Part shown: piece after piece, positions 35,369 through 58,223 of the stretch
How the letters are laid out: each line of letters starts with the position of its first letter
Position numbering within the stretch: the first letter of the stretch is position 1
IMG/VR virus record: IMGVR_UViG_3300022839_000006
Location: 62,001 to 126,000 of that record
DNA length: 64,000 bases
Strand: one strand, 5' to 3'
The notes under the pieces: generated by a model
Told to the model about the DNA's origin: nothing
The model's input: only the letters and a program-made list of their open reading frames with translations
Database searches by the model: none
Program-made: the position numbers and the translations under genes

Positions 35369-36112
35369 TCATCCGATGAAGTTGAACACAAGTGGTTGCA
35401 GTGTATTAATTGCTTGTTCTTCAAGGCGAAGTCTCTCTTCACGTGCATCACTTAGGATTTGTGCTCCGTTGAATGTCACACCGCCGACAAGTTGCATATT
35501 TTCAAATTTTGTAAGGTTAAAGCCCCACTGTTCTTTTACAAGAGTGGTTGCATAATTCTGTAACCATCTGTCTCTCCAGAAGTCCGAATATAGCGTATCA
35601 TCTATAATGTCATATGCTTCCATGATAATAACCATTCCAGGGTAAAATTTCTTAGCATCAATATCAATAAAAAGTTTATCTACGTGTCTGTTATATCTGA
35701 TTAGAGGCGTGCCTACGAGCATTTCCTGAATAAACTCTAAATGTTGCATTGACATGACGTAATTTGTCAAGTTATATCCTGTGACGTCCGACAAATTATT
35801 CAACACGAACTGATACGACACATTAAACATGCCAGCCCCAGTAGATATTGAACTTGACAGATTAAAGATTCTTGTAACCCCAAGTAGTCTAGGAGATACA
35901 GAGATATAACCATTATCAATGTCTTCTTGTGTCATTGCATGCTTGAGATATATAAGTTGCGAGCCGTCGTAGTGGTAATCTCTAAAAAAACTAATTGCTT
36001 CATCAACACGATCGTCGACCTGCTCATCAGAGACGTTCACCTGAATAACAGGAGCACCGATTTTGCGAAGCAAATATTCTTTAAATTCTTCTCTGTTGCT
36101 TGGCTGAGCCAT
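35369..36112 (-). CDS. gp13: neck protein
   Basis: YLLRK.GAPVIQVNV.DEQ..DR.DEA, QWG.NL.KF..MQL.GGVT.NG; likely start MAQPS at 36112. Confidence 0.95.
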   Translation of the reverse strand: MAQPSNREEFKEYLLRKIGAPVIQVNVSDEQVDDRVDEAISFFRDYHYDGSQLIYLKHAMTQEDIDNGYISVSPRLLGVTRIFNLSSSISTGAGMFNVSYQFVLNNLSDVTGYNLTNYVMSMQHLEFIQEMLVGTPLIRYNRHVDKLFIDIDAKKFYPGMVIIMEAYDIIDDTLYSDFWRDRWLQNYATTLVKEQWGFNLTKFENMQLVGGVTFNGAQILSDAREERLRLEEQAINTLQPLVFNFIG

Positions 36113-36133
36113 TGTCCACACCCCTTTTTATTG

Positions 36134-36141
36134 TATTTATA
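36134..36141 (-). promoter_or_regulatory. T4-type late promoter TATAAATA
   Basis: Exact consensus upstream of gp13. Confidence 0.85.
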
Positions 36142-36150
36142 CAAAAGGTG

Positions 36151-36720
36151 TTATGTCGCTGAAGCATCTAGAAACAGCACTTGATCTTCCTTATAGTATT
36201 CAAGTAACACTTCAATAAAAGCGGGATCTGAAAGCAACTCATTAACATAAGGCTCGACTTTGAGCTTATGTTCATTTTCTATTGTAGAGTTGTATTTTTT
36301 CACGTCATTGATGCCCAATGCTTTAGATATATTGAGTTTGAAGTTTTTATCCATCGCAATGTATGTTGGGTTGGTAAGGTCTCTACAGAAATATGAAAGT
36401 GGCTGGTGATGAAGGTCGCCTATTGATTTGAAGTTCTTCCAATTTTTCCTTTCAAACCAAGCAGCAAAATTGTCAAATTTAAAGTTGTTATATTGCAAAT
36501 GGTGGTAGCAGACTTCAATAGTAGAACCTTTCCACCTTTCCACCACATCTCGAACAACAATTATTGCTTCATAATCGTATATTGAATCTCTTATATAATT
36601 GCCATTTTTCCAACCCATTCTCATTAGATCGTGCGAAACGCTTTTGGATGCATTCTTAGGTATATCTAACCACATCTTCCTTTCAGTGTGGTTAAGATAG
36701 CAATTGCCTGGAAAGTTCAT
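36151..36720 (-). CDS. sulfotransferase (Sulfotransfer_2-like)
   Basis: 5'-PSB-like IPKNASKS, 3'-PB-like VRD..ERW.GS, H..P..Y, terminal YY.ED. Confidence 0.72.
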   Translation of the reverse strand: MNFPGNCYLNHTERKMWLDIPKNASKSVSHDLMRMGWKNGNYIRDSIYDYEAIIVVRDVVERWKGSTIEVCYHHLQYNNFKFDNFAAWFERKNWKNFKSIGDLHHQPLSYFCRDLTNPTYIAMDKNFKLNISKALGINDVKKYNSTIENEHKLKVEPYVNELLSDPAFIEVLLEYYKEDQVLFLDASAT

Positions 36721-37424
36721 AACCCGAAGTTAGCCTTTACTGAATCGTGAACTGCGATGTAATCTGGACCAATAAAATCTTCGTCGGTCAGACTATACTC
36801 GTGGAACTCAACGTTGTCTGGTTTCAGCTTTCCTAATGTAAAACCAAGTGGTTGTAGGAACTTATAACTATCAATCAACATCCATTTAGTCAACACACAT
36901 ATAAAACTATATTCAAACTGTATTACTTTTACTTTTCCTTCTTTGAGTGTATTTTCAAACCCTTTAAACACTTTACCTTCAGCACCTTCAGTGTCAATTT
37001 TTAGATAATCAATTTGCTGAATTTGTCTACTTTCAACATACTGATCGCCTGTCATTGTGAGGCCTGTTCTGATCTCGCTATCATCAAGTTGCAAGTCAAG
37101 AATTGAAGTGCTGAGTGCGTCATAAGAAGCTTTATATCTCATGGGGATTGAGCCAGCGGAATCAGACAAACCGAAACTGTTTGGGATCATCTTGTCGTCG
37201 AGTTCAATGTTGGAAAGCATTCTTCGGTATGTATCTGGTATTACCTCGAACATATGAATATCAGCGTCCGCTTGATATTGTCTTGTCATGTTAGTCCACT
37301 CGCCGATATTTGAACCAACGTCAAAAATGGTTTTAAACTGATTTTTAAATCTTTCTTGGATCCAAGTCTCGCCGTGCTCTTGAAATTCTCTCGTTGCGTA
37401 GGATCTATCGTATACGTGTGTCAT
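36717..37424 (-). CDS. FkbM-family SAM methyltransferase
   Basis: IFDVGSNIGEW, FE..P, IDYLKIDTEGAE..V..G, IQFEY. Confidence 0.92.
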   Translation of the reverse strand: MTHVYDRSYATREFQEHGETWIQERFKNQFKTIFDVGSNIGEWTNMTRQYQADADIHMFEVIPDTYRRMLSNIELDDKMIPNSFGLSDSAGSIPMRYKASYDALSTSILDLQLDDSEIRTGLTMTGDQYVESRQIQQIDYLKIDTEGAEGKVFKGFENTLKEGKVKVIQFEYSFICVLTKWMLIDSYKFLQPLGFTLGKLKPDNVEFHEYSLTDEDFIGPDYIAVHDSVKANFGL

Positions 37425-40141
37425 TATCTAAAAACCCTTGTATCATTATGTGTTACGGATACTGTATTTTCTTTTTCAACTGTTTGTGACTCGACTGGCT
37501 GCTCTGTCTTTTCGACCACAGCAATTTGCTCATTCAATTTGAAGGTGTGATTTCCTATGTGTTCGCACTTAATCGAAGTGTCTGCCCAAATCTTAAATCC
37601 TAGGTCTCTTGCTTTTTTGCAAAAGTAAACGTCCTCAGAAACGGTGTTGATATGTTCAAGAGCTGACGTGTAATAAAAATGTGGGTATTCCATTGTGCGT
37701 ATTACATTTGCTTTTACTAGACATGCACCGAAACCACATCCAGCAATTTCAACAACACCTCTGTCTTTGAGCATCTCGTAAGGAATGTTAGTCATACCGC
37801 CAGACGGCGTGTCCATATACAATTCAACTGTATGGGTATTTGTGATTCGTTGTATGTACAATCCAGAGATTACATCCACATCAGCAGACAACATTCTTAC
37901 GAGTGCATCTTCAGGTAGTACTATATCACTGTCTACCGAAAAGAGATAATCATATCTCTTTGTCCATTCAGCAATTAAATTTCGAATCTGGTCGATTTGA
38001 TATCCATAAGCATACTGAAAGTCTACTTTGTATCCTTCTGGGACGGTCATATTATATATTGACTTCATAGTTTCAGGCTCTATGTATCTATTAGTTGGTA
38101 TTGCTAATAGTATTGTTTTCACTGTTGCATCCTTTTTATCTTTTTCGTATGAAAGATTGGCATTTTTATTCTGCTCGTCTCCACTTACCTTATAATCATT
38201 GAGTGGGTTTGCATCGTTATAATTGCAGACTATTTCCTTATTACAATAGATCTTTTCTGGTTCTATTCTTTCTATCAGTTCATAGAAAAGAGGGTTGTCG
38301 TGCCCTGATTTCATCCACTCTCCATTCACTTTGAATTTTTCGACATCAAGAGTGGGAAAATATTCTCCCAAGCATGTCCTGAGATGCGTATACGGAATTT
38401 TCCAGTTGAAGTGATGATCTCTATAAGATCTCGTTTTCTTTACTTCAATGGGATAATCTTGAGCTATCAGAGGTATGTTATCTGCAACGGACCACATTGA
38501 CCCGTAAGTAAATTCATAGCCCTGACCATAAAGGTCGTTGTAGTAATGGAAGATTGTATTGTTATTTATAAGCCAATCGTCACCGTCTAACAACATCACA
38601 ATGTCGTCTGGTTTGCAACCACTCACCGCTTTGATCTGATTTGCGATGGCACCTTCATTTTCTTCATTTCTAATCAACTGAAATTTTGATTTTAGATTGT
38701 GTGAAAGAGAGTTGATTGTCTGTTGTGCTATTTCGAACGAGTTGTCGTCCGAGCAATCGTCAATTAAAATGTGTGTATAGTTGTCATAATCCTGCTGGGC
38801 AATTGAAAGAATATTCTTCTGAATGTACTTTTCAGCGTTCCAAAACGGAGATATTACTGAAATTCTTTTCTGGTTGTTGAACGATCTATACTCTTTTCTG
38901 ACTGGCATTTCGCTAGTTCTTCCGAACACGCGAGAAACCTTGTCGTTGATGCGAGTGACATTTTGATAGTCTTCAACGGAGAGAAACTCGTCATTGATCT
39001 TATATAAGAATTGCTTCCATTGAAGAGCAACTGTATCCCATCCGTAAACATCCTTGATGACATCGCAGTAATTTTGCTTCTGTTGATGAGCATATGGGTT
39101 ATTATAGGCATTAAAGAATGTAGCAAGAAACTTTTTAACCTGTTCTTCTTTGTTGATGTGAGGAAAAAGATTGTTAGGCTCAATTGCATAATCAATTTGA
39201 TAGCACGCAAGATCAATTGCTGTTTCTTCAAGTGCGCCAAATCGTGTTGTTACGATAGGAGTTCTATACAGTAGAGATTCAAGCGACGATATGCCGAATG
39301 TTTCTGGGAAAGCACCTGGGTACAGCATCATATATGCGTTTGCAAGTATTCCTGCAATTTCGTGCTGAGGGATTACCCCAGTAAATGTGACACCTAAATC
39401 TTTTAGATCTTGACTGTTTGTTAGTTCAGAAACTGTATTTTCCTGAGCATCAGGCTCGGCACCTTCTCTGAAACGGTAATACCCACCGATAATGGTCAAC
39501 CTTGCTTCTGGGATATGTTTCTTAATCTCTGGCCAAATATGTTGTACTAGAGGCAACATTCCCTTAGTTGCAGATGCATTGTAAACAAAATGGTTCTTGT
39601 CTTTTTTTGATATGTCAACTTCAGGAATGTGACAGACAGCGCCGTTGCGAGTTTGAAAGATTGACTTCTTGAGAACTTCATAATTTCTCTTTTTACCGTG
39701 TGCGCAAGTAAGAATATACGAGGTGTGCCAATCAGAAAGAGTAAATATGTGGTCAATTTTACCAGAAATTACAAGGTCTTCTACCAGCTGATCGCCTTCT
39801 ATAAAGGTATCATGAAGCCAGAGTAACCTCTTGTTAGCAGTATGTATGAATGGGTAGTCGTTATTTACAAATGGCTCGACAGTTCTCGAAACTATGACCG
39901 AATCGTAGGTTTCATTGTGCGACTTTGCATCTTTGTTGTCGATGTATCGAACGTTATCATACGTACCAGCTTGAGAACGGGAAGAGTCATCACAGTTGTT
40001 AAAAACCGTGACGTGAAACCCTAGTTCTGCTAGTTCTTTTGAAATCAGTGTTACAGCGGACTCTGAGCCCCCAAGACCTTGTTTTGATAGTGTAGTGCCA
40101 TCATAACATAAGCCGATCTTGTCAATAAGTGCTATTTTCAT
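37424..40141 (-). CDS. three-domain glycosyltransferase (GT4-like GT-B + GT2 + GT2-like GT-A)
   Basis: GLGGSE and YP..FPETFGISSLE (GT4); ISVI.P..N...IDDCS.D and LDGDD (GT2); VDSDI, GCGFG, SED.YFC, CEHIG (GT-A). Confidence 0.9.
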   Translation of the reverse strand: MKIALIDKIGLCYDGTTLSKQGLGGSESAVTLISKELAELGFHVTVFNNCDDSSRSQAGTYDNVRYIDNKDAKSHNETYDSVIVSRTVEPFVNNDYPFIHTANKRLLWLHDTFIEGDQLVEDLVISGKIDHIFTLSDWHTSYILTCAHGKKRNYEVLKKSIFQTRNGAVCHIPEVDISKKDKNHFVYNASATKGMLPLVQHIWPEIKKHIPEARLTIIGGYYRFREGAEPDAQENTVSELTNSQDLKDLGVTFTGVIPQHEIAGILANAYMMLYPGAFPETFGISSLESLLYRTPIVTTRFGALEETAIDLACYQIDYAIEPNNLFPHINKEEQVKKFLATFFNAYNNPYAHQQKQNYCDVIKDVYGWDTVALQWKQFLYKINDEFLSVEDYQNVTRINDKVSRVFGRTSEMPVRKEYRSFNNQKRISVISPFWNAEKYIQKNILSIAQQDYDNYTHILIDDCSDDNSFEIAQQTINSLSHNLKSKFQLIRNEENEGAIANQIKAVSGCKPDDIVMLLDGDDWLINNNTIFHYYNDLYGQGYEFTYGSMWSVADNIPLIAQDYPIEVKKTRSYRDHHFNWKIPYTHLRTCLGEYFPTLDVEKFKVNGEWMKSGHDNPLFYELIERIEPEKIYCNKEIVCNYNDANPLNDYKVSGDEQNKNANLSYEKDKKDATVKTILLAIPTNRYIEPETMKSIYNMTVPEGYKVDFQYAYGYQIDQIRNLIAEWTKRYDYLFSVDSDIVLPEDALVRMLSADVDVISGLYIQRITNTHTVELYMDTPSGGMTNIPYEMLKDRGVVEIAGCGFGACLVKANVIRTMEYPHFYYTSALEHINTVSEDVYFCKKARDLGFKIWADTSIKCEHIGNHTFKLNEQIAVVEKTEQPVESQTVEKENTVSVTHNDTRVFR

Positions 40142-40175
40142 TTTATATCCATCATGTAGAATTTAAGGTATTGGT

Positions 40176-41936
40176 TTATTTATCCTTGCTCAATTTCCTT
40201 ACCGCGTCAACCAATATTGCAATCAGAGGTATGTAAGAGACCGACTTGACACCATTTTCGTTTGTTGTTACTAAATCTGGCACAATCTGCTCTAGTTCTT
40301 GTGCAATAACACCGTAGCTTTTCTTCTTGTTGTCTTTCCAATTAAAGGAGTATGTGCCAATTTGATTAATAATACCAAGACTGTCTATATCAGAATTGAA
40401 ATTCTCTTTATAATTTGCATCAGATAGAGAGTTAAATTCAGTAGCATTTAATGTGCCAGTTGAAGGATTAAAATACAATTTATCTGAAGCAACGTATACT
40501 ACCTGCGCAACTCCGCTACTAGATCCAACGAAACCTAAAAATCTGGTTGCATCAGTAGTTTCGTTGGTTATAGTAATACTTGAACCTTCTGCAGCAGGAC
40601 CTTGACTTCCGGTAAATCCTAAGTCACCTTTGGATCCGGTAAATCCTGCCCCTTGTGAGCCGACATAGCCAGTGTCACCTTTGGATCCGGTAAATCCTAC
40701 GTCACCTTTGGATCCAGTAAACCCAGCTGTGCCTTGACTTCCAGTAAAACCAAAGTCTCCCTTGGAACCAACAAAGCCAGTATCACCTCGACTGCCAGTG
40801 TAACCAATTGAACCTGCATAGCCTAGGTCACCTTTGGATCCAACAAAACCAGTAAATCCTAGTGACCCGGTGTAACCAATTGAACCAGCATAACCCAAAT
40901 CGCCTTTGGACCCAGCATATCCTACGTCACCTTGCGATCCAGAATAACCCAAAACACCTTTACTGCCAGTAAATCCAAAAGATCCAGTGTATCCTACATC
41001 GCCTTTGGATCCAGAATAACCAGTTGTACCTTGACTTCCGACATAACCAATTGAACCAGCATAACCCAAATCACCTTTGGATCCATCAAAACCAGTTGTA
41101 CCTTGGCTACCGACATAACCAATCGAACCGACATAACCCAAATCGCCTTTGGATCCATCAAAACCAGTTGTACCTTGGCTACCAGTAAATCCTTGCGACC
41201 CAGTGTAACCAATCGAACCGACATAACCCAAATCGCCTTTGGATCCATCAAAACCAGTTGTACCTTGGCTACCAGTAAATCCTGCCCCTTGGGAACCAGC
41301 ATAACCCAAATCGCCTTTGGACCCATCAAAACCAGTTGTACCTTGGCTACCAGTAAATCCTAGCGACCCAGTGTAACCAATCGACCCAGTAAACCCTAGT
41401 TGGCCGCGCGACCCAGAAAAGCCTATCAAGCCCTGTGATCCTGCGAAACCTATACTGCCCTGTGATCCTGCGAAACCTATACTGCCCTGCGAACCCGCGT
41501 ATCCCCGAGAACCTATATCGCCTTTCGAACCTGTGAAGCCGAGAGGACCTGTGAAGCCAGTCTCGCCTTTTGAGCCTGTAAAGCCAACAGAGGCGGCCTC
41601 TCCTGCTACACCTTGAATGCCTTGGGACCCAGAAAAGCCTAACGAACCAGTGTAACCCAGTTCGCCTTGGGATCCTGCAAAGCCAAGTGATCCAGTAAAG
41701 CCGAGAGAACCTGTGAAGCCTATCTCGCCTTTTGAGCCTGTATAGCCAACAGCAGCATATGCGCCCGCTACACCTTGAGATCCAGTAAAACCTCTACTAC
41801 CAGAAAAGCCACTGTTGCCTTTAGATCCGTCAAAGCCGCTGGTGCCCTGTGAACCTGTGTACCCTCTATTTCCTACAGTATTTACTGCTATTCTAGGACC
41901 TACGGTGGTGCTAGGTATCACGATTAAATCGCTCAA
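40176..41936 (-). CDS. collagen-like fibre protein with C-terminal S74 intramolecular chaperone
   Basis: Long (G-F/Y-T/A/V/S/D-G-S-X)n run; SD..YKEN, YGVIAQELE..VP.LV, V.Y..L. Confidence 0.88.
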   Translation of the reverse strand: MSDLIVIPSTTVGPRIAVNTVGNRGYTGSQGTSGFDGSKGNSGFSGSRGFTGSQGVAGAYAAVGYTGSKGEIGFTGSLGFTGSLGFAGSQGELGYTGSLGFSGSQGIQGVAGEAASVGFTGSKGETGFTGPLGFTGSKGDIGSRGYAGSQGSIGFAGSQGSIGFAGSQGLIGFSGSRGQLGFTGSIGYTGSLGFTGSQGTTGFDGSKGDLGYAGSQGAGFTGSQGTTGFDGSKGDLGYVGSIGYTGSQGFTGSQGTTGFDGSKGDLGYVGSIGYVGSQGTTGFDGSKGDLGYAGSIGYVGSQGTTGYSGSKGDVGYTGSFGFTGSKGVLGYSGSQGDVGYAGSKGDLGYAGSIGYTGSLGFTGFVGSKGDLGYAGSIGYTGSRGDTGFVGSKGDFGFTGSQGTAGFTGSKGDVGFTGSKGDTGYVGSQGAGFTGSKGDLGFTGSQGPAAEGSSITITNETTDATRFLGFVGSSSGVAQVVYVASDKLYFNPSTGTLNATEFNSLSDANYKENFNSDIDSLGIINQIGTYSFNWKDNKKKSYGVIAQELEQIVPDLVTTNENGVKSVSYIPLIAILVDAVRKLSKDK

Positions 41937-41940
41937 TTTC

Positions 41941-42279
41941 CTACTCCGGTCTTGTGATAGTTGGGATTATGTGGACAGTGCCTTCCAGTAACTTTTTCAC
42001 ATTTCCATTTTGATTGGTATAAATTACATCGTACTGGTATTTACCAGGTTCTAGATCGGCGGTCTTTTCAGCTCCAATGAAAATGTCTAAATCTACTGTT
42101 TCACCACCGCCATTTTCTTGTATTGTAACTGAGGCATCAAACAACTTAGCAGATGAATAAACTTTTCTTGCACTAGAGTAGAAAGCTAAACCTTCTGTGG
42201 TGTTTTCATCTAGTGTAATCTGAAGACGAAGTAGAAAATCAATTCCCTGATCTACATAGAGATTTGCTCTTGTTGTCAT
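41941..42279 (-). CDS. small structural protein (T4-like, ANL.VDQG.DF motif)
   Basis: RANLYVDQG.DF, T..L..GKY.YDV, LEG.V.I.P.IT. Confidence 0.75.
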   Translation of the reverse strand: MTTRANLYVDQGIDFLLRLQITLDENTTEGLAFYSSARKVYSSAKLFDASVTIQENGGGETVDLDIFIGAEKTADLEPGKYQYDVIYTNQNGNVKKLLEGTVHIIPTITRPE

Positions 42280-42310
42280 TGTGGAAACCTTCTACTCTTG
42301 TTGTTAATCC

Positions 42311-42318
42311 TATTTATA
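42311..42318 (-). promoter_or_regulatory. T4-type late promoter heading the collagen-GT-MTase-sulfotransferase unit
   Basis: Exact TATAAATA upstream of ORF 41941-42279; downstream genes abut or overlap through 36151. Confidence 0.8.
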
Positions 42319-42857: not shown

Positions 42858-44468
42858 TTATCCTTTTATAATGATTTTAGTGGTGGCTACAGCAACCCCT
42901 GCATAGACATTTGGGTTGCCTGGAGTTTGAGCTAAGGCGCCGGTACCGGTCACGAAGTATTGCTGCGCCGTTACCAAGCCTGACTGTGACTCATTTACCG
43001 AACCGCCAATTTGCACAGTAGCTGTGGCAGCATCAGCGTAGGCTCCAGCAGAAAAGCCAATGTAGTTCTCAGTGGTCAGATTTGTTCCTACAGCGTCTAG
43101 GCTATCAATTGAAATAGCAGTACCGAAGTTAGAGTTGCCGAAGTCTCTGTAAGCAATGGCAACTTTGTTTGAGTTGCTGTCAAAAGTTGCCAAGGGGGTG
43201 AAGGTACTTGCACTTTCAAACACGACAGGAGTGCCAAAGCTGATTGAAGTCCCACTGACAGTCCCTACAACGGCAGTGCCGAAGCCAGAGTTGGCTTCGT
43301 CTCTATAGGCAATGACGACCTTGTTGTTGAAACTGTCAAAAGTGATTGTGATGTTGGTGGTATCGGCACTTGCAAACACGACAGTAGTACCAAAGCTAAT
43401 TGAAGTTCCACTGACAGTACCTACTCTGGCAGTGCCGAAGCTGGAGCTGCCTCTATAGGCAATGACGACCTTGTTGTTGAAACTGTCAAAAGTGGCTGAG
43501 ATATGGTATGTGTATGCACTATTGAACACGACAGCAGTGCCAAAGCTGATTGAGGTTCCACTGACAGTACCTACTACAGCAGTGCCGAAGCCAGAGTTGC
43601 CGCTGTCTCTATAAGCAATGACGACTTTGTTTGAGTTGCTGTCAAAAGTGGCTGAGATAAGGGCGGTATTTGCACTTTCAAACACGACAGGAGTGCCGAA
43701 GCTAATTGAAGTTCCACTGACAGTACCTACTCTGGCAGTGCCGAAGCTGGAGTTGCCGGCGTCTGAATAAGCAATGACAACCTTATTGTTGGAACTGTCA
43801 AAGGTGGCTGAGATGTTGGTAGCATTTGCACTCTCGAACACGACATGAGTGCCGAAGCTGATTGAAGTCCCACTGACAGTTCCTACAACGGCAGTGCCGA
43901 ATTGAGAGTTGCCGTTGTCTCTATAAGCAATGACGACCTTGTTTGAGTTGCTGTCAAAGGTGGCCGCGGTATAGGTGGCACTTGCACTCTCGAACACGAC
44001 AGGAGTGCCGAAGCTGATTGAGGTTCCGCTGACAGTACCTACAACGGCAGTGCCGAAGCCGGAGTTGCCGTAGTCTGTATAAGCAACGACAACCTTATTG
44101 TTGAAACTGTCAAAAGTGGCTGACATCCAGTCGGTAGTTGCACTATTGAACACGACAGCTTCAGAAGAACTAAGACCAACCGCACTCACAGTACCATCTG
44201 CGTTAATAACTACAGGCACGCCATTTGGCAGTGTACCAGAGGCGATTGCTTGCAATGTCGGACCGGTCGATCCGCCAATTGATCCCCACTCAACCCCACC
44301 AAATCCTTCAAATGTAGCGGCTGTGCTGTTGTATCTTAGTTGTCCAATGACGCCCACAGGTCTTTCAAGATCAGTACCTACTGGAACCTTAATTGCAGTG
44401 GTTCCTGCTAAATCTATGTATGCAGTCTGATCGTTTATGATCGTGGTGCCTTGTATTTTGATTGCCAT
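42858..44468 (-). CDS. putative receptor-binding protein A, 7 x 52-aa repeat beta-propeller
   Basis: N-terminal P.GT..ERP....GQLRYN....FEG fibre motif; seven SATFDS.NNKVVIAY..GNS.FGTAVVGTVSGTSISFGT repeats. Confidence 0.8.
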   Translation of the reverse strand: MAIKIQGTTIINDQTAYIDLAGTTAIKVPVGTDLERPVGVIGQLRYNSTAATFEGFGGVEWGSIGGSTGPTLQAIASGTLPNGVPVVINADGTVSAVGLSSSEAVVFNSATTDWMSATFDSFNNKVVVAYTDYGNSGFGTAVVGTVSGTSISFGTPVVFESASATYTAATFDSNSNKVVIAYRDNGNSQFGTAVVGTVSGTSISFGTHVVFESANATNISATFDSSNNKVVIAYSDAGNSSFGTARVGTVSGTSISFGTPVVFESANTALISATFDSNSNKVVIAYRDSGNSGFGTAVVGTVSGTSISFGTAVVFNSAYTYHISATFDSFNNKVVIAYRGSSSFGTARVGTVSGTSISFGTTVVFASADTTNITITFDSFNNKVVIAYRDEANSGFGTAVVGTVSGTSISFGTPVVFESASTFTPLATFDSNSNKVAIAYRDFGNSNFGTAISIDSLDAVGTNLTTENYIGFSAGAYADAATATVQIGGSVNESQSGLVTAQQYFVTGTGALAQTPGNPNVYAGVAVATTKIIIKG

Positions 44469-44717: not shown

Positions 44718-46337
44718 TTATCTTTTCACTATGAGTTTTGTAGAGGATACAGCAACACCCGCATAGACTTCAGGGTTGCTCGGAGTTTCAGCTAAGGTGC
44801 CATTACCGGTCACGAAGTATTGCTGTCCGGCTGTCAAGCCTAATTGAACACCGTTGATCGCACCGATAAGCTGCACAGTAGCTGTGGTAGCATCAGCGTA
44901 GGCTCCAGCAGAAAAGCCAATATAGTTCTCAGTGGTCAGATTTGTTCCTGCAGCGCTTAGACTATCAATTGAAATAGCAGTGCCGAAGCCGGAGTTGCCG
45001 TCGTCTCTATAAGCAATGACAACCTTGTTTGAGTTACTGTCAAAGGTGGCTGAGATAAAGTAGGTAGTTGCACTTTCAAACACGACAGGAGTGCCGAAGC
45101 TGATTGAAGTCCCACTGACAGTCCCTACAACGGCAGTGCCGAAGCTGGAATTGCCCACGTCTCTATAAGCAATGACGACTTTGTTGTTGAAACTGTCAAA
45201 AGTGGCTGAGATCCGGTCGGTACCTGCACTCGCGAACACGACAGGAGTGCCGAAGCTGATTGAAGTCCCACTGACAGTTCCTACAATGGCAGTGCCGAAG
45301 TAAGAATTGCCGTTGTCTGAATAAGCAATGACGACCTTGTTTGAGTTGCTGTCAAAAGTGGCCGAGATGTAGTTGGCAGTTGCACTCTCGAACACGACAG
45401 TAGTGCCGAAGCTGATTGAAGTCCCACTGACAGTTCCTACGACAGCAGTGCCGAAGCCAGAGTTGCCGTCGTCTCTATAAGCAATGACAACCTTGTTTGA
45501 GTTACTGTCAAAGGTGGCTGAGATAAAGTAGGTACTTGCACTCTCGAACACGACAGCAGTGCCGAAGCTGATTGAAGTCCCATTGACAGTTCCTACGACA
45601 GCAGTGCCGAATCGAGAGTTGTTGCCTTCGTCTCTATAAGCAATGACAACCTTATTGTTGAAACTGTCAAAGGTGGCCGAGATGTGGCTGGTAGTTGCAC
45701 TCTCGAACACGACAGTAGTGCCGAAGCTGATTGAAGTCCCACTGACAGTTCCTACGACAGCAGTGCCGAATCGAGAGTTGCCCACGTCTGTATAAGCAAT
45801 GACAACCTTATTGTTGAAACTGTCAAAAGTGGATAAGATGTAGTTGGTAGGTACACTCGCGAACACGACAGGAGTGCCGAAGCTGATTGAAGTCCCACTG
45901 ACAGTTCCTACGACAGCAGTGCCGAAGCCGGAGTTGTATGAGTCATAATAAGCAACGACAACCTTATTGTTGAAACTGTCAAAGGTGTCCGAGATCCAGC
46001 TGGTACCTGCACTCTCGAACACGACAGCTTCAGAAGAACTAAGACCAACCGCACTCACAGTACCATCTGCGTTAATAACTACAGGCACTCCATTTGGCAG
46101 TGTACCAGATGCAATTGCTTCTAATGTTGGGTTGGCCGATCCGCCAATTGATCCCCAGCCAGCCCCACCAAATCCTTCAAATGCAGCCGCGGTGCTGTTG
46201 TATCGTATCTGTCCAGTGACACCCGCAGGTCTTTCAAGATCAGCACCTACCGGAACCTTAATTGCAGTGGTTCCTGCTAAATCTATGTATGCAGTCTGAT
46301 CGTTTATGATCGTGGTGCCTTGTATTTTGATTGCCAT
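44718..46337 (-). CDS. putative receptor-binding protein B, 7 x 52-aa repeat beta-propeller (paralog of A)
   Basis: Same N-terminus MAIKIQGTTIINDQTAYIDLAGTTAIKVPVG and same repeat framework. Confidence 0.8.
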   Translation of the reverse strand: MAIKIQGTTIINDQTAYIDLAGTTAIKVPVGADLERPAGVTGQIRYNSTAAAFEGFGGAGWGSIGGSANPTLEAIASGTLPNGVPVVINADGTVSAVGLSSSEAVVFESAGTSWISDTFDSFNNKVVVAYYDSYNSGFGTAVVGTVSGTSISFGTPVVFASVPTNYILSTFDSFNNKVVIAYTDVGNSRFGTAVVGTVSGTSISFGTTVVFESATTSHISATFDSFNNKVVIAYRDEGNNSRFGTAVVGTVNGTSISFGTAVVFESASTYFISATFDSNSNKVVIAYRDDGNSGFGTAVVGTVSGTSISFGTTVVFESATANYISATFDSNSNKVVIAYSDNGNSYFGTAIVGTVSGTSISFGTPVVFASAGTDRISATFDSFNNKVVIAYRDVGNSSFGTAVVGTVSGTSISFGTPVVFESATTYFISATFDSNSNKVVIAYRDDGNSGFGTAISIDSLSAAGTNLTTENYIGFSAGAYADATTATVQLIGAINGVQLGLTAGQQYFVTGNGTLAETPSNPEVYAGVAVSSTKLIVKR

Positions 46338-46373: not shown

Positions 46374-47999
46374 CTATTTATACTTCGTGGTTTCTATATT
46401 CTCTACGCGATCTGACAGTGTTTTAAAGCCGTCAATTAAGATGGCAATTAAAGGAATGTAATTCACATACTTCTTACCGGATGTATTTGTCACCAATTCA
46501 GGCAGTATTTGCTCAAGTTGCTGAGCAATTACACCGTAGCTTCTAACACCAGTTTCTTTCCAATCGAATGATATTGTTTCAATGCTATTAAGTATTGCAT
46601 TTGAATTGTAGATTTTATTTGGGTTATCTTTAAGTGTAATATCAGAGAGTGAATTGAATTCAGTAGCGTTTAGTGTTCCAGTCGAAGGGTTGTAGAATAA
46701 TTTTGTAGATGAAACAAACAGATCATCCGTGGCACCAGAAGTATTGTTTACAAACGTAATGTATCTCGTGTTGTCAGTTGCAACATCATCAGTTATTACA
46801 AGATCTGCTCCAGCGCCAGCACTTCCAGTAAATCCAACATTTCCCTGCGAACCTGTGAAGCCATTTGAACCAGAATATCCACTAGAACCACTAAAGCCAT
46901 CTTCTCCTTTTGATCCGGCAAAGCCTTGTGGGCCGACATCACTTACATTAATAACCCCTGCCATACTTGCGTGTATAGAACACTGGTAATATAGAGTACT
47001 TGGGGCATTGTATGGCAATCTAACGATCACTATCCCATTTTCAGCGCCATTATTAGTAACACCGTCATTATATTGACTGCCAGTACCGGTTACTTGTGCT
47101 GTCTTAATGTAAAACGGATGTCCCGGAGCTGCGACGTTGAAAGCATACGTAAACCCACGAATGAGATTCAAGGTCGGCTGAGATGCACCGTCAATGATAT
47201 AATTCGAAGAACCATTATTAGTTACTGTATATTCTCTTCTGCCTTCTATTCCAGCTGATCCTGTAAAACCTTGTGAACCTGTGAAGCCAAAAGATCCAGC
47301 AAACCCAGTTTCACCTTGGGAACCGGAGTAACCCAAGGAACCAGTAAAACCTACATCTCCTTGTGAACCAGTAAACCCAGTATCAGCCGCTTCGCCCGCA
47401 ACACCTTGCGAACCAGAATACCCCATATCACCTTTAGACCCGTCAAAGCCAGTTGTGCCTCGACTGCCTGTAAAACCAAACGAGCCAGTAAAACCAACAA
47501 GGCCCTGTGAACCCGTGTAACCCAATTCACCTTGTACACCCTGCGAGCCAGTATACCCAAAAGAACCAGTATACCCTACATCTCCTTGAGAGCCAGTATA
47601 ACCTTGAGAGCCAGTATAGCCGACGAAGCCGCCCTGTCCAGTCGAACCAGTAAACCCTTTACTTCCGGAATAACCTCGCGAGCCTGCATAACCCAAATCT
47701 CCTTGAGAGCCAGTAAAGCCAAACGAACCAGTAAAACCAACAATACCCTGAGAACCCGTATATCCTTGGGATCCATCAAATCCTGTAATACCTTGAGAGC
47801 CAACAAATCCAGTTTCGCCTTGAGAGCCAGTATAACCTTGAGAACCTGTATAGCCTTGAGAACCCGTATAACCTATAGAAGCAGCTTCGCCGGGAACACC
47901 TTGTGAACCTACGAAGCCAGCGCCTTGACTTCCCGTAAAGCCCCGAGAACCGTCAAACCCCTTATATGAACCACTTATAAAACTACTTAAAACTGTCAT
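46374..47999 (-). CDS. collagen-like fibre protein with inserted cupredoxin-like domain and S74 chaperone
   Basis: GFTGSQ repeats; GHPF...LYYQCSIHASM; SDITLKDN, YGVIAQ. Confidence 0.85.
   Translation of the reverse strand: MTVLSSFISGSYKGFDGSRGFTGSQGAGFVGSQGVPGEAASIGYTGSQGYTGSQGYTGSQGETGFVGSQGITGFDGSQGYTGSQGIVGFTGSFGFTGSQGDLGYAGSRGYSGSKGFTGSTGQGGFVGYTGSQGYTGSQGDVGYTGSFGYTGSQGVQGELGYTGSQGLVGFTGSFGFTGSRGTTGFDGSKGDMGYSGSQGVAGEAADTGFTGSQGDVGFTGSLGYSGSQGETGFAGSFGFTGSQGFTGSAGIEGRREYTVTNNGSSNYIIDGASQPTLNLIRGFTYAFNVAAPGHPFYIKTAQVTGTGSQYNDGVTNNGAENGIVIVRLPYNAPSTLYYQCSIHASMAGVINVSDVGPQGFAGSKGEDGFSGSSGYSGSNGFTGSQGNVGFTGSAGAGADLVITDDVATDNTRYITFVNNTSGATDDLFVSSTKLFYNPSTGTLNATEFNSLSDITLKDNPNKIYNSNAILNSIETISFDWKETGVRSYGVIAQQLEQILPELVTNTSGKKYVNYIPLIAILIDGFKTLSDRVENIETTKYK
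46375..46382 (-). promoter_or_regulatory. T4-type late promoter TATAAATA
   Basis: Exact consensus overlapping the upstream stop, ahead of propeller B. Confidence 0.75.
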
Positions 48000-48012: not shown

Positions 48013-50052
48013 TTATACTAGGAAATTTCCGGTATTTGTTGATGGATACTCTCTAGTGTTATTTATATTCCCCCAGATTATGCGAACTGCGCCGGAGCTG
48101 CCGCCGTAGCCTGTGCCACCCAATGTAGTAGATGGTACGATGTTACTGTTCCATCCACTGCCGCCTTGCCCGCCACCGCCTGCAAATATCGGACCAACTG
48201 AGCCATTCCTTATAGCCCCACTGCCACTGACCGCACCAGATGTACCTTCTGCTATAATTCCAACCCGACCTCCATCGGATACGCTACCGGCTCTGTTTCC
48301 TCCAGCACCGCCGCCGCCAGTTCCAGCAGCCGCGACTGTTGGGCCAGGTGCATATCCTGCACCCGCGCCGCCGTCACCAGAATAACCGGCAGCGCCTCCA
48401 CCACCGCTGGGACTTCCGCCCAGTTCCTGGGTGGAGTGCTGTCCACCGTTGCCACCGTTGCCACCGCCAAGTCTTCCAGTACCACTAGACAAAATACTAC
48501 CAGAACCGTCAGGACCAATTGTACCGTATACGCCACCGCCTTCACCGCCACCTGCACCCAATAACGACGTGCCAGAAAAACTATCTCGTCTTATATAAGT
48601 AGACAGTCCGTCATTACCATGATTACCTTTGCCTATGCCAGCACCTGAACCAGTTCGATTGGCGCCACCAGAACCTACAGTAATGTAAAGAATCTCGCCA
48701 GGAGTGACACTGAATGTTCCATATGCGAGTGCACCGCCACCGCCACCACCACCACCGGACGTAGCATTTGTTGAAGTTCCTTTATTTACGCCACTGGCAC
48801 CACTACCACCGCCGCCTATAGCAACAGCAGACAACTCTGATATTCCCAAAGGCACAACAAACTCATATAGCGACTCGGTTTGCGAAGAACTCAATTGACC
48901 ATAATACACCTCTTCTGGCAGTGCTTTATTTTCTATTGTTACCTCATGTGAAACTGATCTTGTTTGGTTTCCGGCACTGTCGGTCGCGGCCAGTGTTATT
49001 CTGAAAATTTCAGCATCAGGTTCTACAACATAAACTGCGTATATACCGCTAAATGTAGCAGTAAGATCCCAGGTCGCCAAAAATTCGGAAGTGCTCAAAT
49101 CCCACGGTGTAAGCAATTTATATACGTGTACTTTACCAGAGTCATCAGACAAATACATTTTTGTGCCTAATAGTGGGTCCACAAACACATCAGACACACT
49201 AAATCCTACAGTAAGTGTATGTGAGAGAGTCCAGTTGTTGCATTGGTTTGCGACTCCGCTGTACTCCAACACTACAGTAGGTGATAGACTCGAGACGAAT
49301 GCCCTTGTACCATCACGGCTTACGGCAATCCCTGATGGAAGAGAAGTAGCAGCAGAAATATCGAGAGTTCTTGCAGGTGCGTCTGGAAAAAGTGGACTCC
49401 ATGCTGGAATATCATCTTGCAATATGGTCTGAATATCGCGATCTACTTGGAATAGTATTGTTCCTGTTTCATCTATCCACATCCCTTGATGGTTGCCGCC
49501 GGTACTCCCATAACTTCCTGTGACTGCGGTAGGATTTATTGTGCTGAGATTCCACTGATCTACGCTAGGGGCTGCAGTCAATGAATACTCTCTAAACTGA
49601 TCGTTCGTCGCATCTTGTAGCCACATTTTACTACCATCAGGCTTAAAAAACATGCCTAAGTTAGAACTTGATTCTACCTCGTTGTATGTTTCTTGTAATA
49701 CAGGGGAAGAAAGTTTTCTATCTGTTGAATATCTTTTGACAGTTTTGGATCCTAAACCAGAATCTCCTAGGACAAAAATAAGAGTATCATCATTTTGAGT
49801 TGTCGTTGTGGACAATTGAGCAGAATTGTTTGTCAAAGAAAACTGACCAGACAATGACGAAGTAATATCATTGCTATTAATACCATCGATGGTGTAATTT
49901 ACTGTAGTGCCATTTGCAAGAACTATGCCCTCGGCATCAAGTGTTATTGTAAATCCATTGCCTTCAGAAACCAATGCGGTAGAGCTTAATAAATTAAACC
50001 TTACCGACGCCAAGAAATTTGCCAATACCATGTGTAAATTGCCTATTGACAT
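48013..50052 (-). CDS. virion structural protein (Ig-like + propeller-like + glycine-rich domains)
   Basis: FFKPDGSKMW...WNLST and L.TPWDLST repeats; C-terminal GGGG-rich domain ending GAVRIIWG; likely start 50052. Confidence 0.72.
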   Translation of the reverse strand: MSIGNLHMVLANFLASVRFNLLSSTALVSEGNGFTITLDAEGIVLANGTTVNYTIDGINSNDITSSLSGQFSLTNNSAQLSTTTTQNDDTLIFVLGDSGLGSKTVKRYSTDRKLSSPVLQETYNEVESSSNLGMFFKPDGSKMWLQDATNDQFREYSLTAAPSVDQWNLSTINPTAVTGSYGSTGGNHQGMWIDETGTILFQVDRDIQTILQDDIPAWSPLFPDAPARTLDISAATSLPSGIAVSRDGTRAFVSSLSPTVVLEYSGVANQCNNWTLSHTLTVGFSVSDVFVDPLLGTKMYLSDDSGKVHVYKLLTPWDLSTSEFLATWDLTATFSGIYAVYVVEPDAEIFRITLAATDSAGNQTRSVSHEVTIENKALPEEVYYGQLSSSQTESLYEFVVPLGISELSAVAIGGGGSGASGVNKGTSTNATSGGGGGGGGALAYGTFSVTPGEILYITVGSGGANRTGSGAGIGKGNHGNDGLSTYIRRDSFSGTSLLGAGGGEGGGVYGTIGPDGSGSILSSGTGRLGGGNGGNGGQHSTQELGGSPSGGGGAAGYSGDGGAGAGYAPGPTVAAAGTGGGGAGGNRAGSVSDGGRVGIIAEGTSGAVSGSGAIRNGSVGPIFAGGGGQGGSGWNSNIVPSTTLGGTGYGGSSGAVRIIWGNINNTREYPSTNTGNFLV

Positions 50053-51980
50053 TAGAATATAGCCCCACCCACAACACACTTATTAGTATCAACAAACAAC
50101 ACAGTACATATTCCTCTTGTAGCTAAGGTAACAGAAGACACGTTGGTATTTACACCGGATATATATGCAGTAGCAACAGAGCATGTAATTGTTGCATTTC
50201 CTGTAGTATCGTTATAGATGGTAATTACATCGCCAGGCGAAAACACGCTATTTGGAATTGTAATACTTCCACCAGTTCCTATCGAAACGTATTCGCCTTT
50301 GTCTGCAATCGCTAAGGTATATGATGTCGTTTTATCTGTGCCTGCACTTGGTACTGTATTTACACCTTGCGAGCCTGTAAAGCCGATGGACCCCTGTGAA
50401 CCTGCAAAGCCTGTAGAGCCTGTATTACCGCTTGAGCCTTGAGAACCTGAAAATCCACGAGAACCTGTGAAGCCTGCAACAGTACTTGCCTCACCTGCAG
50501 GTCCCTGAGATCCGGAAAACCCACGAGAACCTGTAAAGCCTGTATCAGCTACAGCTCCTTCTATTCCTTGTGCACCACGGGAACCTGTAAAACCTATATC
50601 GCCTTTTGAACCTGTATAACCAATTGCGTCAGCTGCGCCCGGAATACCTTGCGAGCCTGTATACCCAAGATCGCCCCCAGATCCTGTATAACCAATTGTG
50701 CCGAAAGAACCTTGCTCTCCTTGAGAGCCAGTGTATCCGATTGCTTCTGCTGCCCCAGGGACACCTTGCGAACCTGTATAACCAACTGCGTCAGCTGCGC
50801 CTGGAATACCACGGGAACCTGTAAAACCTACATCGCCTTTCGATCCTGTATAACCAATTGCATCAGCTGCGCCTGGAACACCTTGTGAACCAGTAAAGCC
50901 GATGTTGCCCCTAGATCCATCATATCCTGTGCCAGCAGAGCCTGTAAATCCAACAGGGCCCTGGTTTCCGACGTTGGCATAAAGCTGCCAAGTAGATCCG
51001 TCCCATGCAAAATCTACACGGACATTAGGAAGATCAATAACAAGGTCTTGAGCAGAACCTTCAATTGTGTTGCCATTGCCATCTACAATTAAGTTGAAAG
51101 TCTGAAAACTACTTCCGTCTGCAATCGTTATGACACTGCCTTCTTCTGGGTTGAGAGGAAAAAATATCGTAAATGTGCCGCCGCTAGTATCTGCAATAAT
51201 ACCATCTTGGTTGATCGCTGTGTAGTTTGATGTCTTTCTTGCCCAATTAAGAGTAGCATTCAGTCCAGCAGATCCTGTAAAGCCAAAAGATCCTGCAAAT
51301 CCCTGTGAGCCTGTGAAGCCACGGGAGCCATCATATCCACGAGATCCTGTAAAACCAATAGCACCGAAAGATCCAACAGATCCTGTAAAGCCTTGAGAGC
51401 CAGTAAAGCCAAACGAACCAGTGAAACCACGAGATCCTGTAAAACCACGAGATCCTGTAAAACCACGAGATCCTGAAAAGCCCCGAGATCCATCAAATCC
51501 TGTTGAGCCTGAGAAACCTTGTGAACCTGTGTATCCAAACGAGCCCGTATAGCCAATAGAACCTGTAAAACCGGTTGGGCCCAAGATAGGTCCTATCACG
51601 TTGAATTCAGATCCGTTCCACACGTAAAGAATTGCTTCATCTTCTACAAAGTATGCTGTGTTTGTCTCGTTGCCTACAGTAGGAAGGTCATTGGCAGTGG
51701 GTACTGCGTCTTCGAACGTAAAGCCCTCTCCTCTTTCGCCGCGAGAACCTGTGAAACCACGAGAACCTGTAAAACCAAACGAACCTGTGAAGCCGCGGGA
51801 ACCTGTGAAACCAGAACTAACAGGCAGCCAAATATATCCATCCGATGCGTAAATTACATCATCATCGCCATAAACCATTGCTCCACGGTATACGGCCGGG
51901 TCCAGACCGATCGGTGTTGGTTGAGGCAACCCGTGTGACAGAAGCTGCGTTCTACCTCGTGTTGTTTTAAACGACATCAT
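50052..51980 (-). CDS. collagen-like fibre protein with interspersed beta domains
   Basis: GFTGSR/Q repeats alternating with globular inserts (ADTSGG.FTI..P..P, LATRG.CT.LF). Confidence 0.85.
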   Translation of the reverse strand: MMSFKTTRGRTQLLSHGLPQPTPIGLDPAVYRGAMVYGDDDVIYASDGYIWLPVSSGFTGSRGFTGSFGFTGSRGFTGSRGERGEGFTFEDAVPTANDLPTVGNETNTAYFVEDEAILYVWNGSEFNVIGPILGPTGFTGSIGYTGSFGYTGSQGFSGSTGFDGSRGFSGSRGFTGSRGFTGSRGFTGSFGFTGSQGFTGSVGSFGAIGFTGSRGYDGSRGFTGSQGFAGSFGFTGSAGLNATLNWARKTSNYTAINQDGIIADTSGGTFTIFFPLNPEEGSVITIADGSSFQTFNLIVDGNGNTIEGSAQDLVIDLPNVRVDFAWDGSTWQLYANVGNQGPVGFTGSAGTGYDGSRGNIGFTGSQGVPGAADAIGYTGSKGDVGFTGSRGIPGAADAVGYTGSQGVPGAAEAIGYTGSQGEQGSFGTIGYTGSGGDLGYTGSQGIPGAADAIGYTGSKGDIGFTGSRGAQGIEGAVADTGFTGSRGFSGSQGPAGEASTVAGFTGSRGFSGSQGSSGNTGSTGFAGSQGSIGFTGSQGVNTVPSAGTDKTTSYTLAIADKGEYVSIGTGGSITIPNSVFSPGDVITIYNDTTGNATITCSVATAYISGVNTNVSSVTLATRGICTVLFVDTNKCVVGGAIF

Positions 51981-58046: not shown

Positions 58047-58223
58047 TTACCTATTCTCTAGTCTTATAACAGTTTCGCTCAATCTATTTATACACTCTGT
58101 CAAAGACTTCACTTCTAGTCTCAGATCTGTTAGTTCCTTTGCCCGATTTCTTTCTGCCTGGTACTTTTTTAATTCTTGTAGATTTGTTTCGACGATTGCT
58201 TTTGAAAAATTATCTCTTATCAT
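58047..58223 (-). CDS. small coiled-coil late protein (58 aa, not in ORF track)
   Basis: Read by eye: MIRDNFSKAIVETN...RLENR*; overlaps upstream stop; contains TATAAATA at 58085-58092. Confidence 0.7.
   Translation of the reverse strand: MIRDNFSKAIVETNLQELKKYQAERNRAKELTDLRLEVKSLTECINRLSETVIRLENR

Follow-up and report, generated by a model that had tools for sequence, protein, structure and literature searches.

Introduction

In C. difficile, the glycosyltransferase gene sgtA lies immediately upstream of the collagen-like gene bclA3, and SgtA O-glycosylates the threonine of G-P-T repeats, accepting serine as well, at the Y position of G-x-T repeats (PMC7157674). Glycosylation of BclA is thought to aid hydration of the helix (PMC8968730). 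Among viruses, Mimivirus modifies its collagen-like proteins with L230 (lysyl hydroxylase/glucosyltransferase) and R699 (glucosyltransferase) (PMC9546862), and Paramecium bursaria chlorella virus 1 (PBCV-1) builds its capsid glycans in the cytoplasm with A111/114R, a fusion of three glycosyltransferases, and A064R, a glycosyltransferase-glycosyltransferase-methyltransferase protein (PMC7826918). Mycobacteriophage capsid and tail tube are glycosylated by phage glycosyltransferases (Freeman et al. 2023, as cited in PMC12619734). Here, we analyse a stretch of 64 kb (“the window”, positions 62,001 to 126,000 of the ~208-kb viral record IMGVR_UViG_3300022839_000006), in which a collagen-like fibre gene is followed by genes for a 905-aa glycosyltransferase (GT) fusion, here called GT905, a methyltransferase that would use S-adenosylmethionine (SAM) and a probable sulfotransferase that would use 3′-phosphoadenosine-5′-phosphosulfate (PAPS). 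Judging from gene content, gene order and predicted structure, we see about an even chance that this phage glycosylates its own collagen-like fibres.

The genes at issue, with their promoter motifs and the domains of GT905, are as follows (window coordinates).

42311-42318, minus strand: TATAAATA, T4-type late promoter motif, 32 nt upstream of the 112-aa gene
41941-42279, minus strand: 112-aa small protein gene, probable fibre adaptor or collar-like beta-sandwich
40176-41936, minus strand: 586-aa collagen-like fibre gene, Collagen and Peptidase_S74, TTG start
37424-40141, minus strand: GT905 gene, three GT domains
38942-40141, minus strand: GT905 domain 1, residues about 1-400, GT-B fold, GT4-type
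38222-38941, minus strand: GT905 domain 2, residues about 400-640, GT2-type GT-A
37424-38224, minus strand: GT905 domain 3, residues about 640-905, A197-like divergent GT-A
36717-37424, minus strand: 235-aa FkbM-family SAM methyltransferase gene, Pfam Methyltransf_21
36151-36720, minus strand: 189-aa probable PAPS-dependent sulfotransferase gene, minimal form, Pfam Sulfotransfer_2
36134-36141, minus strand: second TATAAATA late promoter motif, heading gp13
35369-36121, minus strand: gp13 neck protein gene, end of the unit and first of the conserved gp13-gp14-gp15 (phrog_211, 6e-38)

A collagen-like fibre and three candidate glycan enzymes lie in one putative late unit

A preliminary description of this DNA, made from its letters, had placed the five genes in an abutting and overlapping late operon, and its order and strand are borne out by the positions of the open reading frames. 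Successive genes are separated by gaps of 4 and 34 nt and then overlap by 1 nt (GT/methyltransferase) and 4 nt (methyltransferase/sulfotransferase), and the TTG start codon of the fibre gene stands behind GGAG. T4-type late promoters were recognized by a TATAAATA −10 element shortly upstream of late genes, without a −35 element. The window holds 15 copies of this motif against 2.7 expected, a number that none of 100 shuffles reached; 13 of the 15 belong to the minus strand, nearly all of them 13 to 190 nt upstream of structural gene starts. No convincing terminator or sigma-70 promoter was found to interrupt the five-gene run, and from these positions the five genes look like one T4-type late transcription unit within the fibre/neck module. 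The gp13 gene, which probably begins with the ATG at 36112, since alignments with homologues start at residue 4, is followed by gp14, a gp9/10-like protein and gp15 (Pfam matches for gp14 and gp15). An exact TATAAATA also occurs within the GT gene at 38563-38570 (minus strand), upstream of the part coding for domain 3; it may be there by chance or may be an internal late promoter.

Putative late expression and location bear directly on DNA hypermodification, in which the GTs would glycosylate modified bases of the phage DNA. Glycosylation of DNA is a familiar role of phage GTs (cited in PMC12619734 and PMC7029224), but both the late motifs and the position in the structural module speak against such a role here. 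In addition, of the 30 Pfam families in the remainder of the window, the 25 listed include no hydroxymethylase-type gene, no likeness to the T4 alpha- or beta-glucosyltransferases was reported in Pfam or PDB searches, and three GT domains accompanied by O-methyl and sulfo enzymes suit a builder of glycans. We regard this explanation as barely plausible.

GT905 combines a GT4-type, a GT2-type and an A197-like domain

The first two domains of GT905 are recognized by Pfam. Domain 1 matches Glycos_transf_1 and Glyco_trans_1_4 at residues 188-312 (36.5 and 40.9 bits against cut-offs of 26.4 and 27), and domain 2 matches Glycos_transf_2 at residues 428-582 (68.5 bits against a cut-off of 23.3, E 2e-19 to 9e-19), with sequence matches in PDB to 5tze/5tz8 (“Glycosyl transferase”), GalT1 and heparosan synthase. 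In an alignment of 20 sequences, the E-x7-E of domain 1 (E280...E288) and the D519-x-D521-D522 of domain 2 are invariant. For domain 3, no Pfam GT family reaches its cut-off, and the GT protein of the window has no GT25 or LH-type domain match in Pfam; its D-S-D is nevertheless invariant in 40 sequences, and its E-D and H are invariant as well. As read from these alignments, all three domains keep their predicted catalytic motifs.

Domain 3 was therefore placed by profile and fold. A profile of 40 homologues matched A197 of Sulfolobus turreted icosahedral virus (STIV; PDB 2c0n) at E 1e-5. The structure check that the preliminary description had proposed, run here on domain 3, agrees: the AlphaFold (AF2) model (predicted local distance difference test [pLDDT] score 82.5) shows a GT-A fold whose best Foldseek match in PDB is again A197 (E 9e-13, template modelling [TM] score 0.71 on target), followed by human COLGALT1 (2.5e-9), Mimivirus R699 (1.8e-8) and the GT domain of LH3 (7e-8). 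The best match to a non-collagen GT-A fold has an E value of about 1e-6, so the collagen GTs score about 100-fold better. Of the GT4+GT2+GT2 order given in the preliminary description, the GT4 and the first GT2 thus stand, and the third domain is a divergent A197-like GT-A rather than a Pfam GT2.

A197 is the closest solved relative of domain 3 by both profile and fold, and is likewise a small viral GT-A with a DxD motif, but it comes from an archaeal virus and is a stand-alone 197-aa protein; in three relatives (L024, L020 and L067), domain 3 is itself a stand-alone gene. To our knowledge, the acceptor of A197 is unproven. Mimivirus resembles the present case in encoding both collagen-like proteins and GTs, with R699 and LH3/COLGALT1 among the best fold matches of domain 3. 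It differs in that L230 and R699 act on hydroxylysine and in a eukaryote host; no lysyl hydroxylase is seen in the window, and the likeness is one of fold only. PBCV-1 provides the nearest parallel in logic, since soluble multi-domain enzymes assemble and methyl-cap a virion glycan there, much as a GT-GT-GT(-FkbM) line could do here. PBCV-1, however, is a giant virus of algae whose glycans are N-linked to its major capsid protein and carry no sulfate, and its enzymes, compared here by domain plan, have other domain families in another order.

No clear transmembrane segment was found in the GT, the methyltransferase or the sulfotransferase. The highest 19-residue hydropathy value among them, 1.62, is borderline and belongs to a stretch in GT domain 3 that we take to be a core strand.

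The fibres are nearly proline-free collagens with a Thr/Ser hexad

The 586-aa fibre matches Pfam Collagen (2e-62) and Peptidase_S74 (1e-13), a self-cleaving C-terminal intramolecular chaperone. It contains 139 G-X-Y triplets and 47-49 G-[FY]-x-G-S-x hexads and, if triple-helical, would by our estimate be about 120 nm long. The 112-aa protein encoded just before it matches phrog_1084 (4e-15), phrog_3304 (L-shaped tail fibre assembly, 2e-7) and, weakly, an LtfC-like Pfam family; its homologues accompany the GT and collagen in other phages. Two more collagen-like genes of this type are present in the window.

46374-47999, minus strand: second hexad collagen fibre gene, 541 aa, S74 chaperone, non-collagen insert
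50052-51980, minus strand: third hexad collagen-like protein gene, 642 aa, no S74 domain

These two have 89 and 103 triplets (Pfam Collagen E 5e-40 and 7e-44), and the trimerising Peptidase_S74 chaperone is therefore found in two of the three genes. The claim that the window holds three almost proline-free hexad collagens with frequent threonine proved accurate: all three have less than 2% proline, with S/F/Y at the X position and T/Q at the Y position, and jointly they contain 120 G-[FY]-x-G-S-x hexads, with threonine at position 3 in 60% and Q/K/R at position 6. Per gene, 47, 33 and 35 hexads were counted against 18, 13 and 14 with shuffled triplets, and no shuffle came close to the actual numbers.

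Across the collagens compared, lysine at hexad position 6 ranges from 0 to 86%, and threonine and serine are constant; for this reason, O-linkage to threonine or serine appears likelier than a hydroxylysine route, even though the fold of domain 3 recalls the hydroxylysine enzymes. A route in the style of COLGALT1, LH3 and R699 was judged less likely on two grounds, the variable lysine and the lack of a 2-oxoglutarate (2OG) oxygenase in the window: within these 64 kb, neither a homologue of the 2OG oxygenases of relatives nor a lysyl hydroxylase was found. Hexad composition showed no difference between collagens with and without a GT at their locus.

The insert of the second collagen (residues about 256-352; 46944-47234, minus strand) carries a His ... 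Cys-x2-His-x2-Met pattern. A likeness to cupredoxins (type-1 copper proteins), noticed by eye, was dropped, as the insert has no sequence match in PDB and its sub-threshold Pfam match is to an unrelated family.

Hexad collagens and the GT fusion are paired across lineages

To obtain hexad collagens irrespective of the GT, the collagen part alone was used as query on viral contigs. This GT lies near the collagen in 11 of the 13 hexad lineages with adequate flanks and near none of 8 non-hexad collagens (Fisher p = 2e-4, kinship ignored). In 10 lineages of this search, the GT is the immediate neighbour of the collagen and is divergently transcribed; in two further lineages it lies one gene or 7.5 kb away. 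Altogether, a hexad collagen is the immediate neighbour of the GT in 13 lineages, 10 of which share the promoter region with it. In the divergent arrangement, a homologue of the 112-aa protein usually occupies the other flank of the GT, the GT strand has its own TATAAATA in L105, L113/115 and L120/122/123, and in several pairs the shared intergenic region has the motif on both strands. The divergent lineages form a deep basal grade on the GT tree and the co-directional lineages a single clade; therefore, the adjacency of collagen and GT appears to have been kept over a long divergence. The co-occurrence that the preliminary description had suggested checking thus extends well beyond this genome, although at least one hexad-collagen locus (L107) has no GT within 10 kb.

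The SgtA-BclA3 pair is similar in that a GT-A gene stands directly beside a collagen-like gene in C. difficile as it does here. The bacterial proteins, however, form spore filaments, the single GT-A domain of SgtA adds GlcNAc, and the G-P-T repeats contain proline; no methyltransferase or sulfotransferase partner figures in the description of that locus, and SgtA is likened to the GT of the window by description, not by sequence. A further adjacency occurs in cyanophage S-CAM7, in which a gene of GT25, the family of COLGALT1, directly precedes a collagen-like tail fibre gene.

The pairing also bears on the possibility that the glycan is destined for some other part of the virion (Gly-rich fibre-tip proteins, the 536/539-aa repeat proteins of the window described below, or capsid or tail subunits) and that the adjacency to collagen is a by-product of the position within the fibre module. 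In the co-directional clade, the gene just upstream of the GT usually encodes a 320-400-aa Gly-rich (PF21722-like) protein, and in mycobacteriophages the glycosylated targets are capsid and tail tube (cited in PMC12619734). These phages resemble ours in that GTs encoded in the structural gene region act on virion proteins; they differ in being siphoviruses that infect Gram-positive bacteria and in having capsid and tail-tube subunits modified at their C-termini, and the available part of PMC12619734 reports no link to collagen, methyltransferase or sulfotransferase. Immediate adjacency of a hexad collagen in the 13 lineages, with the shared promoter regions, and the resemblance of domain 3 to collagen glycosyltransferases argue for the collagen as acceptor, and we give other virion targets a small chance. 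The mycobacteriophage GT genes are, moreover, reportedly separate genes.

Two isolated phages with collagen-like proteins deserve description in their own right. In Synechococcus phage S-CAM7 (KU686213.1, 5985-17586), a sugar cluster lies just before a Thr-rich collagen-like tail fibre gene and comprises GDP-fucose synthesis genes, GT11, a GT8-like gene, a methyltransferase, LicD and GT25. Its annotated “adenylylsulfate kinase” was considered as a sign of sulfation and set aside, as Pfam gives a class I methyltransferase and the annotation looks wrong. In phage P19250A (KX815270.1, 19533-23138), the 1201-aa “tail length tape-measure protein” is a proline-free collagen-like protein with 280 G-[Y/F/I]-S triplets, encoded downstream of the real tape measure gene.

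The methyltransferase is clear and the sulfotransferase moderately supported

The 235-aa protein was correctly named an FkbM methyltransferase: it matches Methyltransf_21 with 50.7 bits against a cut-off of 22.7 (E 3e-13), and DVGSNIGEW, the SAM-binding glycine motif, is visible in it. In most GT homologues, an FkbM domain is fused to the C-terminus of the GT itself.

The 189-aa protein matches Sulfotransfer_2 with 25.4 bits against a cut-off of 22, over profile positions 128-249 of 252 (the C-terminal half). IPKNASKS, VRDxxxRWxGS and HH104-105 are conserved in 19 homologues, and the first two resemble, by eye, the PAPS-binding motifs for the 5′-phosphosulfate and the 3′-phosphate. Its AF2 model (pLDDT 89.7) gave Foldseek matches of which the top 13 are all heparan-sulfate 3-O-sulfotransferases, though weak (E 0.1-2, TM 0.38-0.42), and neither single-sequence nor profile searches of PDB gave a match. 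The sulfotransferase of the preliminary description is accordingly retained, for its Pfam score above the cut-off and its conserved motifs, at moderate rather than strong confidence. Relatives carry Sulfotransfer_3 enzymes, whose best PDB matches are protein-tyrosine sulfotransferases (weak, E about 2e-3); that match covers mainly the N-terminal part, taken as the PAPS-binding region, and serves as a lead only.

An enzyme set of this kind does not by itself specify a protein acceptor. Its product could be an oligo- or polysaccharide, methylated and sulfated, that stays free or lipid-linked, or else a modified small molecule, in each case off the virion. Chloroviruses do make extracellular polysaccharides, according to a chlorovirus review. 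No features of a processive synthase and no clear membrane domains are seen in the enzymes of the window, however, and their fixed position in the structural module and the late motifs are at odds with such a product, to which we assign a slim chance.

The GT is conserved at the fibre/neck border, and a host-envelope role is less likely

The first search of metagenomes returned more than 1,800 GT homologues. GT homologues, grouped at 90% identity, make up 48 lineages and lie at the border between the fibre genes and gp13/gp14/gp15; in about 70 viral loci, the GT is directly upstream of gp13-gp14-gp15 and downstream of fibre genes, and jumbo relatives of 270-370 kb have it at the same fibre/neck border. 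Variants add a further GT2, a GT25 (an insert in L047), a CmcI-like methyltransferase or a Methyltransf_24 domain. Between distant relatives, the GT is 55-64% identical, compared with 22-42% for gp13. One would not expect such conservation if the enzyme served host O-antigens, which are strain-specific.

Among 185,579 species genomes, the full GT fusion was found on only three contigs of metagenome-assembled genomes, binned as Cellvibrionaceae (L137), Gammaproteobacteria NAT245 (L138) and Luminiphilus (L139). A cellular origin of the fusion was rejected, as two of the three carry the same phage fibre module and the third is a 2.9-kb GT fragment. L137 and L138 also show the 112-aa protein, hexad collagens and gp13, and L137 in addition VrlC, the baseplate protein at the far border of the fibre cluster; both look like phage contigs, and their bins may hint at hosts among marine Gammaproteobacteria.

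Some relatives lack this GT and have other sugar-related genes in the same slot. Genes found there in relatives encode Sulfotransfer_3 enzymes, NAD-dependent epimerase, a cytidylyltransferase/mannose-6-phosphate isomerase fusion, kelch-like proteins and 2OG-Fe(II) oxygenases of the prolyl-hydroxylase and DUF6445 types; 2OG-Fe(II) oxygenases lie beside the GT in L079, L087 and L146. The variable cassettes upstream of the GT or of gp13 in relatives are located as follows.

L079, 2516-6253
L087, 4068-8518
L080, 830-1636
L095, 2852-6429
L146, 1-9981

In addition, homing-endonuclease-type genes (GIY-YIG, NUMOD3) occur between the GT and the neck genes in two relatives (L077, 2271-3146; L146, 16505-17371).

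Several points count against glycosylation of the collagen-like fibres. The likeness of domain 3 to collagen GTs is one of fold, with TM about 0.5 and 10-14% identity, and the assignment of the sulfotransferase is only moderate. A hexad collagen lies within 6.5 kb of the GT in only 23 of the 32 informative GT lineages, and about a third of the informative lineages have none within 6-10 kb; GTs of the large co-directional clade mostly have a Gly-rich fibre protein, and not a collagen, encoded next to them. Conversely, L107 has hexad collagens and no GT within its 10-kb flanks, and the partly informative L104, L117, L118 and L119 also have hexad collagens without a GT within 10 kb. The co-occurrence statistics ignore phylogeny, and, to judge by the GT tree, the two arrangements may differ by a single inversion. 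Finally, a related Pro-free G-Y/F-S collagen is encoded in the 39-kb genome of Methylophilaceae phage P19250A, in which no GT is annotated; such helices therefore do not depend on a GT of the phage.

A multi-domain GT with a terminal methyltransferase is, furthermore, also typical of bacterial O-polysaccharide synthesis, and the present enzymes resemble the ABC-transporter type of that pathway. The GT, methyltransferase and sulfotransferase could then remodel a surface polysaccharide of the host (O-chain or capsule), either blocking superinfection or reducing the sticking of progeny to debris. Nucleotide-sugar genes (epimerase/dehydratase, cytidylyltransferase/mannose-6-P isomerase) in the same slot of relatives fit this role, as does a cassette content that varies among relatives as it does in surface-glycan loci. 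It is also the published reading, to the disadvantage of ours, for GTs in the same slot, between VrlC and gp14, of pelagimyophages (PMC7029224).

The “host recognition cluster” of those phages, from VrlC to gp13/14 (Zaragoza-Solas et al. 2020, PMC7029224), has its counterpart here, with the region studied as its neck-proximal end: in pelagimyophages and cyanomyophages, it is a variable island between VrlC and the neck with tail fibres, collagen-repeat proteins and GTs. As far as the available text of PMC7029224 goes, it differs from our account in stressing GT8 enzymes and reading the GTs as modifiers of the host O-chain, and it mentions neither the GT4-GT2-GTA(-FkbM) fusion nor how conserved this is or that it is paired with hexad collagens.

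Against a role in the host envelope stand the late promoter motifs, which are also present on the GT strand of divergent pairs, and the greater conservation of the GT than of the neck proteins (the 55-64% and 22-42% given above) across phages presumably of different hosts. Cellular copies of the fusion are absent from the species genomes searched, no clear membrane segment was found in the enzymes, and no gene for a flippase, polymerase or initiating transferase was seen in the loci. The GT, moreover, tightly adjoins one specific type of fibre gene. The preliminary description had taken late timing and position to argue against both DNA modification and O-antigen conversion. Late motifs and module position do support that argument and weaken the host O-chain explanation, which we consider less likely than fibre glycosylation but give an appreciable minority share of the probability.

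A possible pathway for glycosylated phage collagen

If the phage does glycosylate its own fibres, we would expect the following course. At a late stage of infection and in the cytoplasm of the host, fibre chains of the phage itself would receive sugars from the three GT domains in succession and so come to carry a short O-linked oligosaccharide, with the threonine at position 3 and/or the serine at position 5 of the G-[F/Y]-T-G-S-x hexads as likeliest acceptors. The methyltransferase would cap a sugar hydroxyl with host SAM, and the sulfotransferase would add sulfate with host PAPS. The fibre would then trimerise from its C-terminal chaperone and be mounted on the virion. Candidate roles for the glycan are hydration and stability of the helix, replacing hydroxyproline, as well as shielding and adhesion.

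A wider proposal, which we hold more tentatively than fibre glycosylation as such, is that a large clade of uncultured T4-like phages, distributed worldwide, runs a collagen modification pathway of its own and makes methylated, sulfated glyco-collagen from proline-free G-[F/Y]-T-G-S-x fibres. With the same tentativeness, the pathway would consist of the phage-specific GT4-GT2-GTA(-methyltransferase) line together with sulfotransferases of two unrelated families and, in some relatives, 2OG-Fe(II) oxygenases. It could then be the first collagen glycosylation system of a bacteriophage and the equivalent, among viruses of prokaryotes, of the hydroxyproline/hydroxylysine-glycan chemistry that animals and mimiviruses use, and its variable enzyme modules might tune the surface chemistry of the fibre and hence host range or adhesion; we put neither of these points higher than the proposal itself.

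The gene content of the slot in general terms, and virus-encoded glycosylation of virions, are already known. What appears to be new is the phage-specific GT4-GT2-GTA(-FkbM) fusion, its recurrent partnership with sulfotransferases and its conserved pairing with a proline-free hexad collagen. A full-text literature search gave no report of T4-like tail fibres glycosylated by phage-encoded enzymes.

If the proposal is true, the receptor-binding apparatus of very abundant aquatic phages is a glycoprotein whose surface chemistry is set by the phage. The “auxiliary” GTs of marine and freshwater myophages, now taken as modifiers of host O-antigens, would have to be reread, and models of host range and adsorption for these phages would change. 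So would expectations in virion proteomics, in which modified peptides escape standard searches. The locus would also offer a compact, soluble and bacterially expressible enzyme set for producing recombinant collagens that are glycosylated and free of proline. Nature would in addition have provided a way to test if long triple helices can do with O-glycans on threonine or serine in place of hydroxyproline.

Genome setting and minor observations

The fibre and collagen genes lie between VrlC and the GT cassette, which abuts gp13/gp14.

58220-63688, minus strand: VrlC baseplate protein gene, far border of the fibre (“host recognition”) cluster, DUF4815

The 1822-aa VrlC aligns from end to end, at 35% identity, with the protein annotated as VrlC in Sinorhizobium phage phiM7, and the rest of the window holds a T4-like core of portal, gp23, scaffold, prohead protease, terminase, sheath and tube genes. 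By its gene content, the phage is an uncultured aquatic myovirus of the T4-like kind, and the region is assigned to that end of its fibre cluster (VrlC to gp13) which lies nearest the neck genes. When the region was compared by Megablast with 50,697 genomes of isolated phages, nothing matched, and no GT relative among isolates exceeded about 36% identity; the clade is therefore uncultured and without an annotated reference.

Between the first two collagen genes lie tandem paralogues (42858-44468 and 44718-46337, minus strand) that encode proteins of 536 and 539 aa with 81% identity. Each is headed by its own TATAAATA and contains about seven repeats of ~48 aa, with no Pfam family; a 1535-aa relative is encoded between gp14 and gp15 in other phages (L003/L022). 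The early region on the plus strand (1-21200) encodes, among other proteins, an Acb1-type anti-CBASS protein, a PF04447 dATP/dGTP pyrophosphohydrolase, a GapR-like DNA-binding protein, a cREC_REC domain protein, PhoH and a T4-type RNA ligase.

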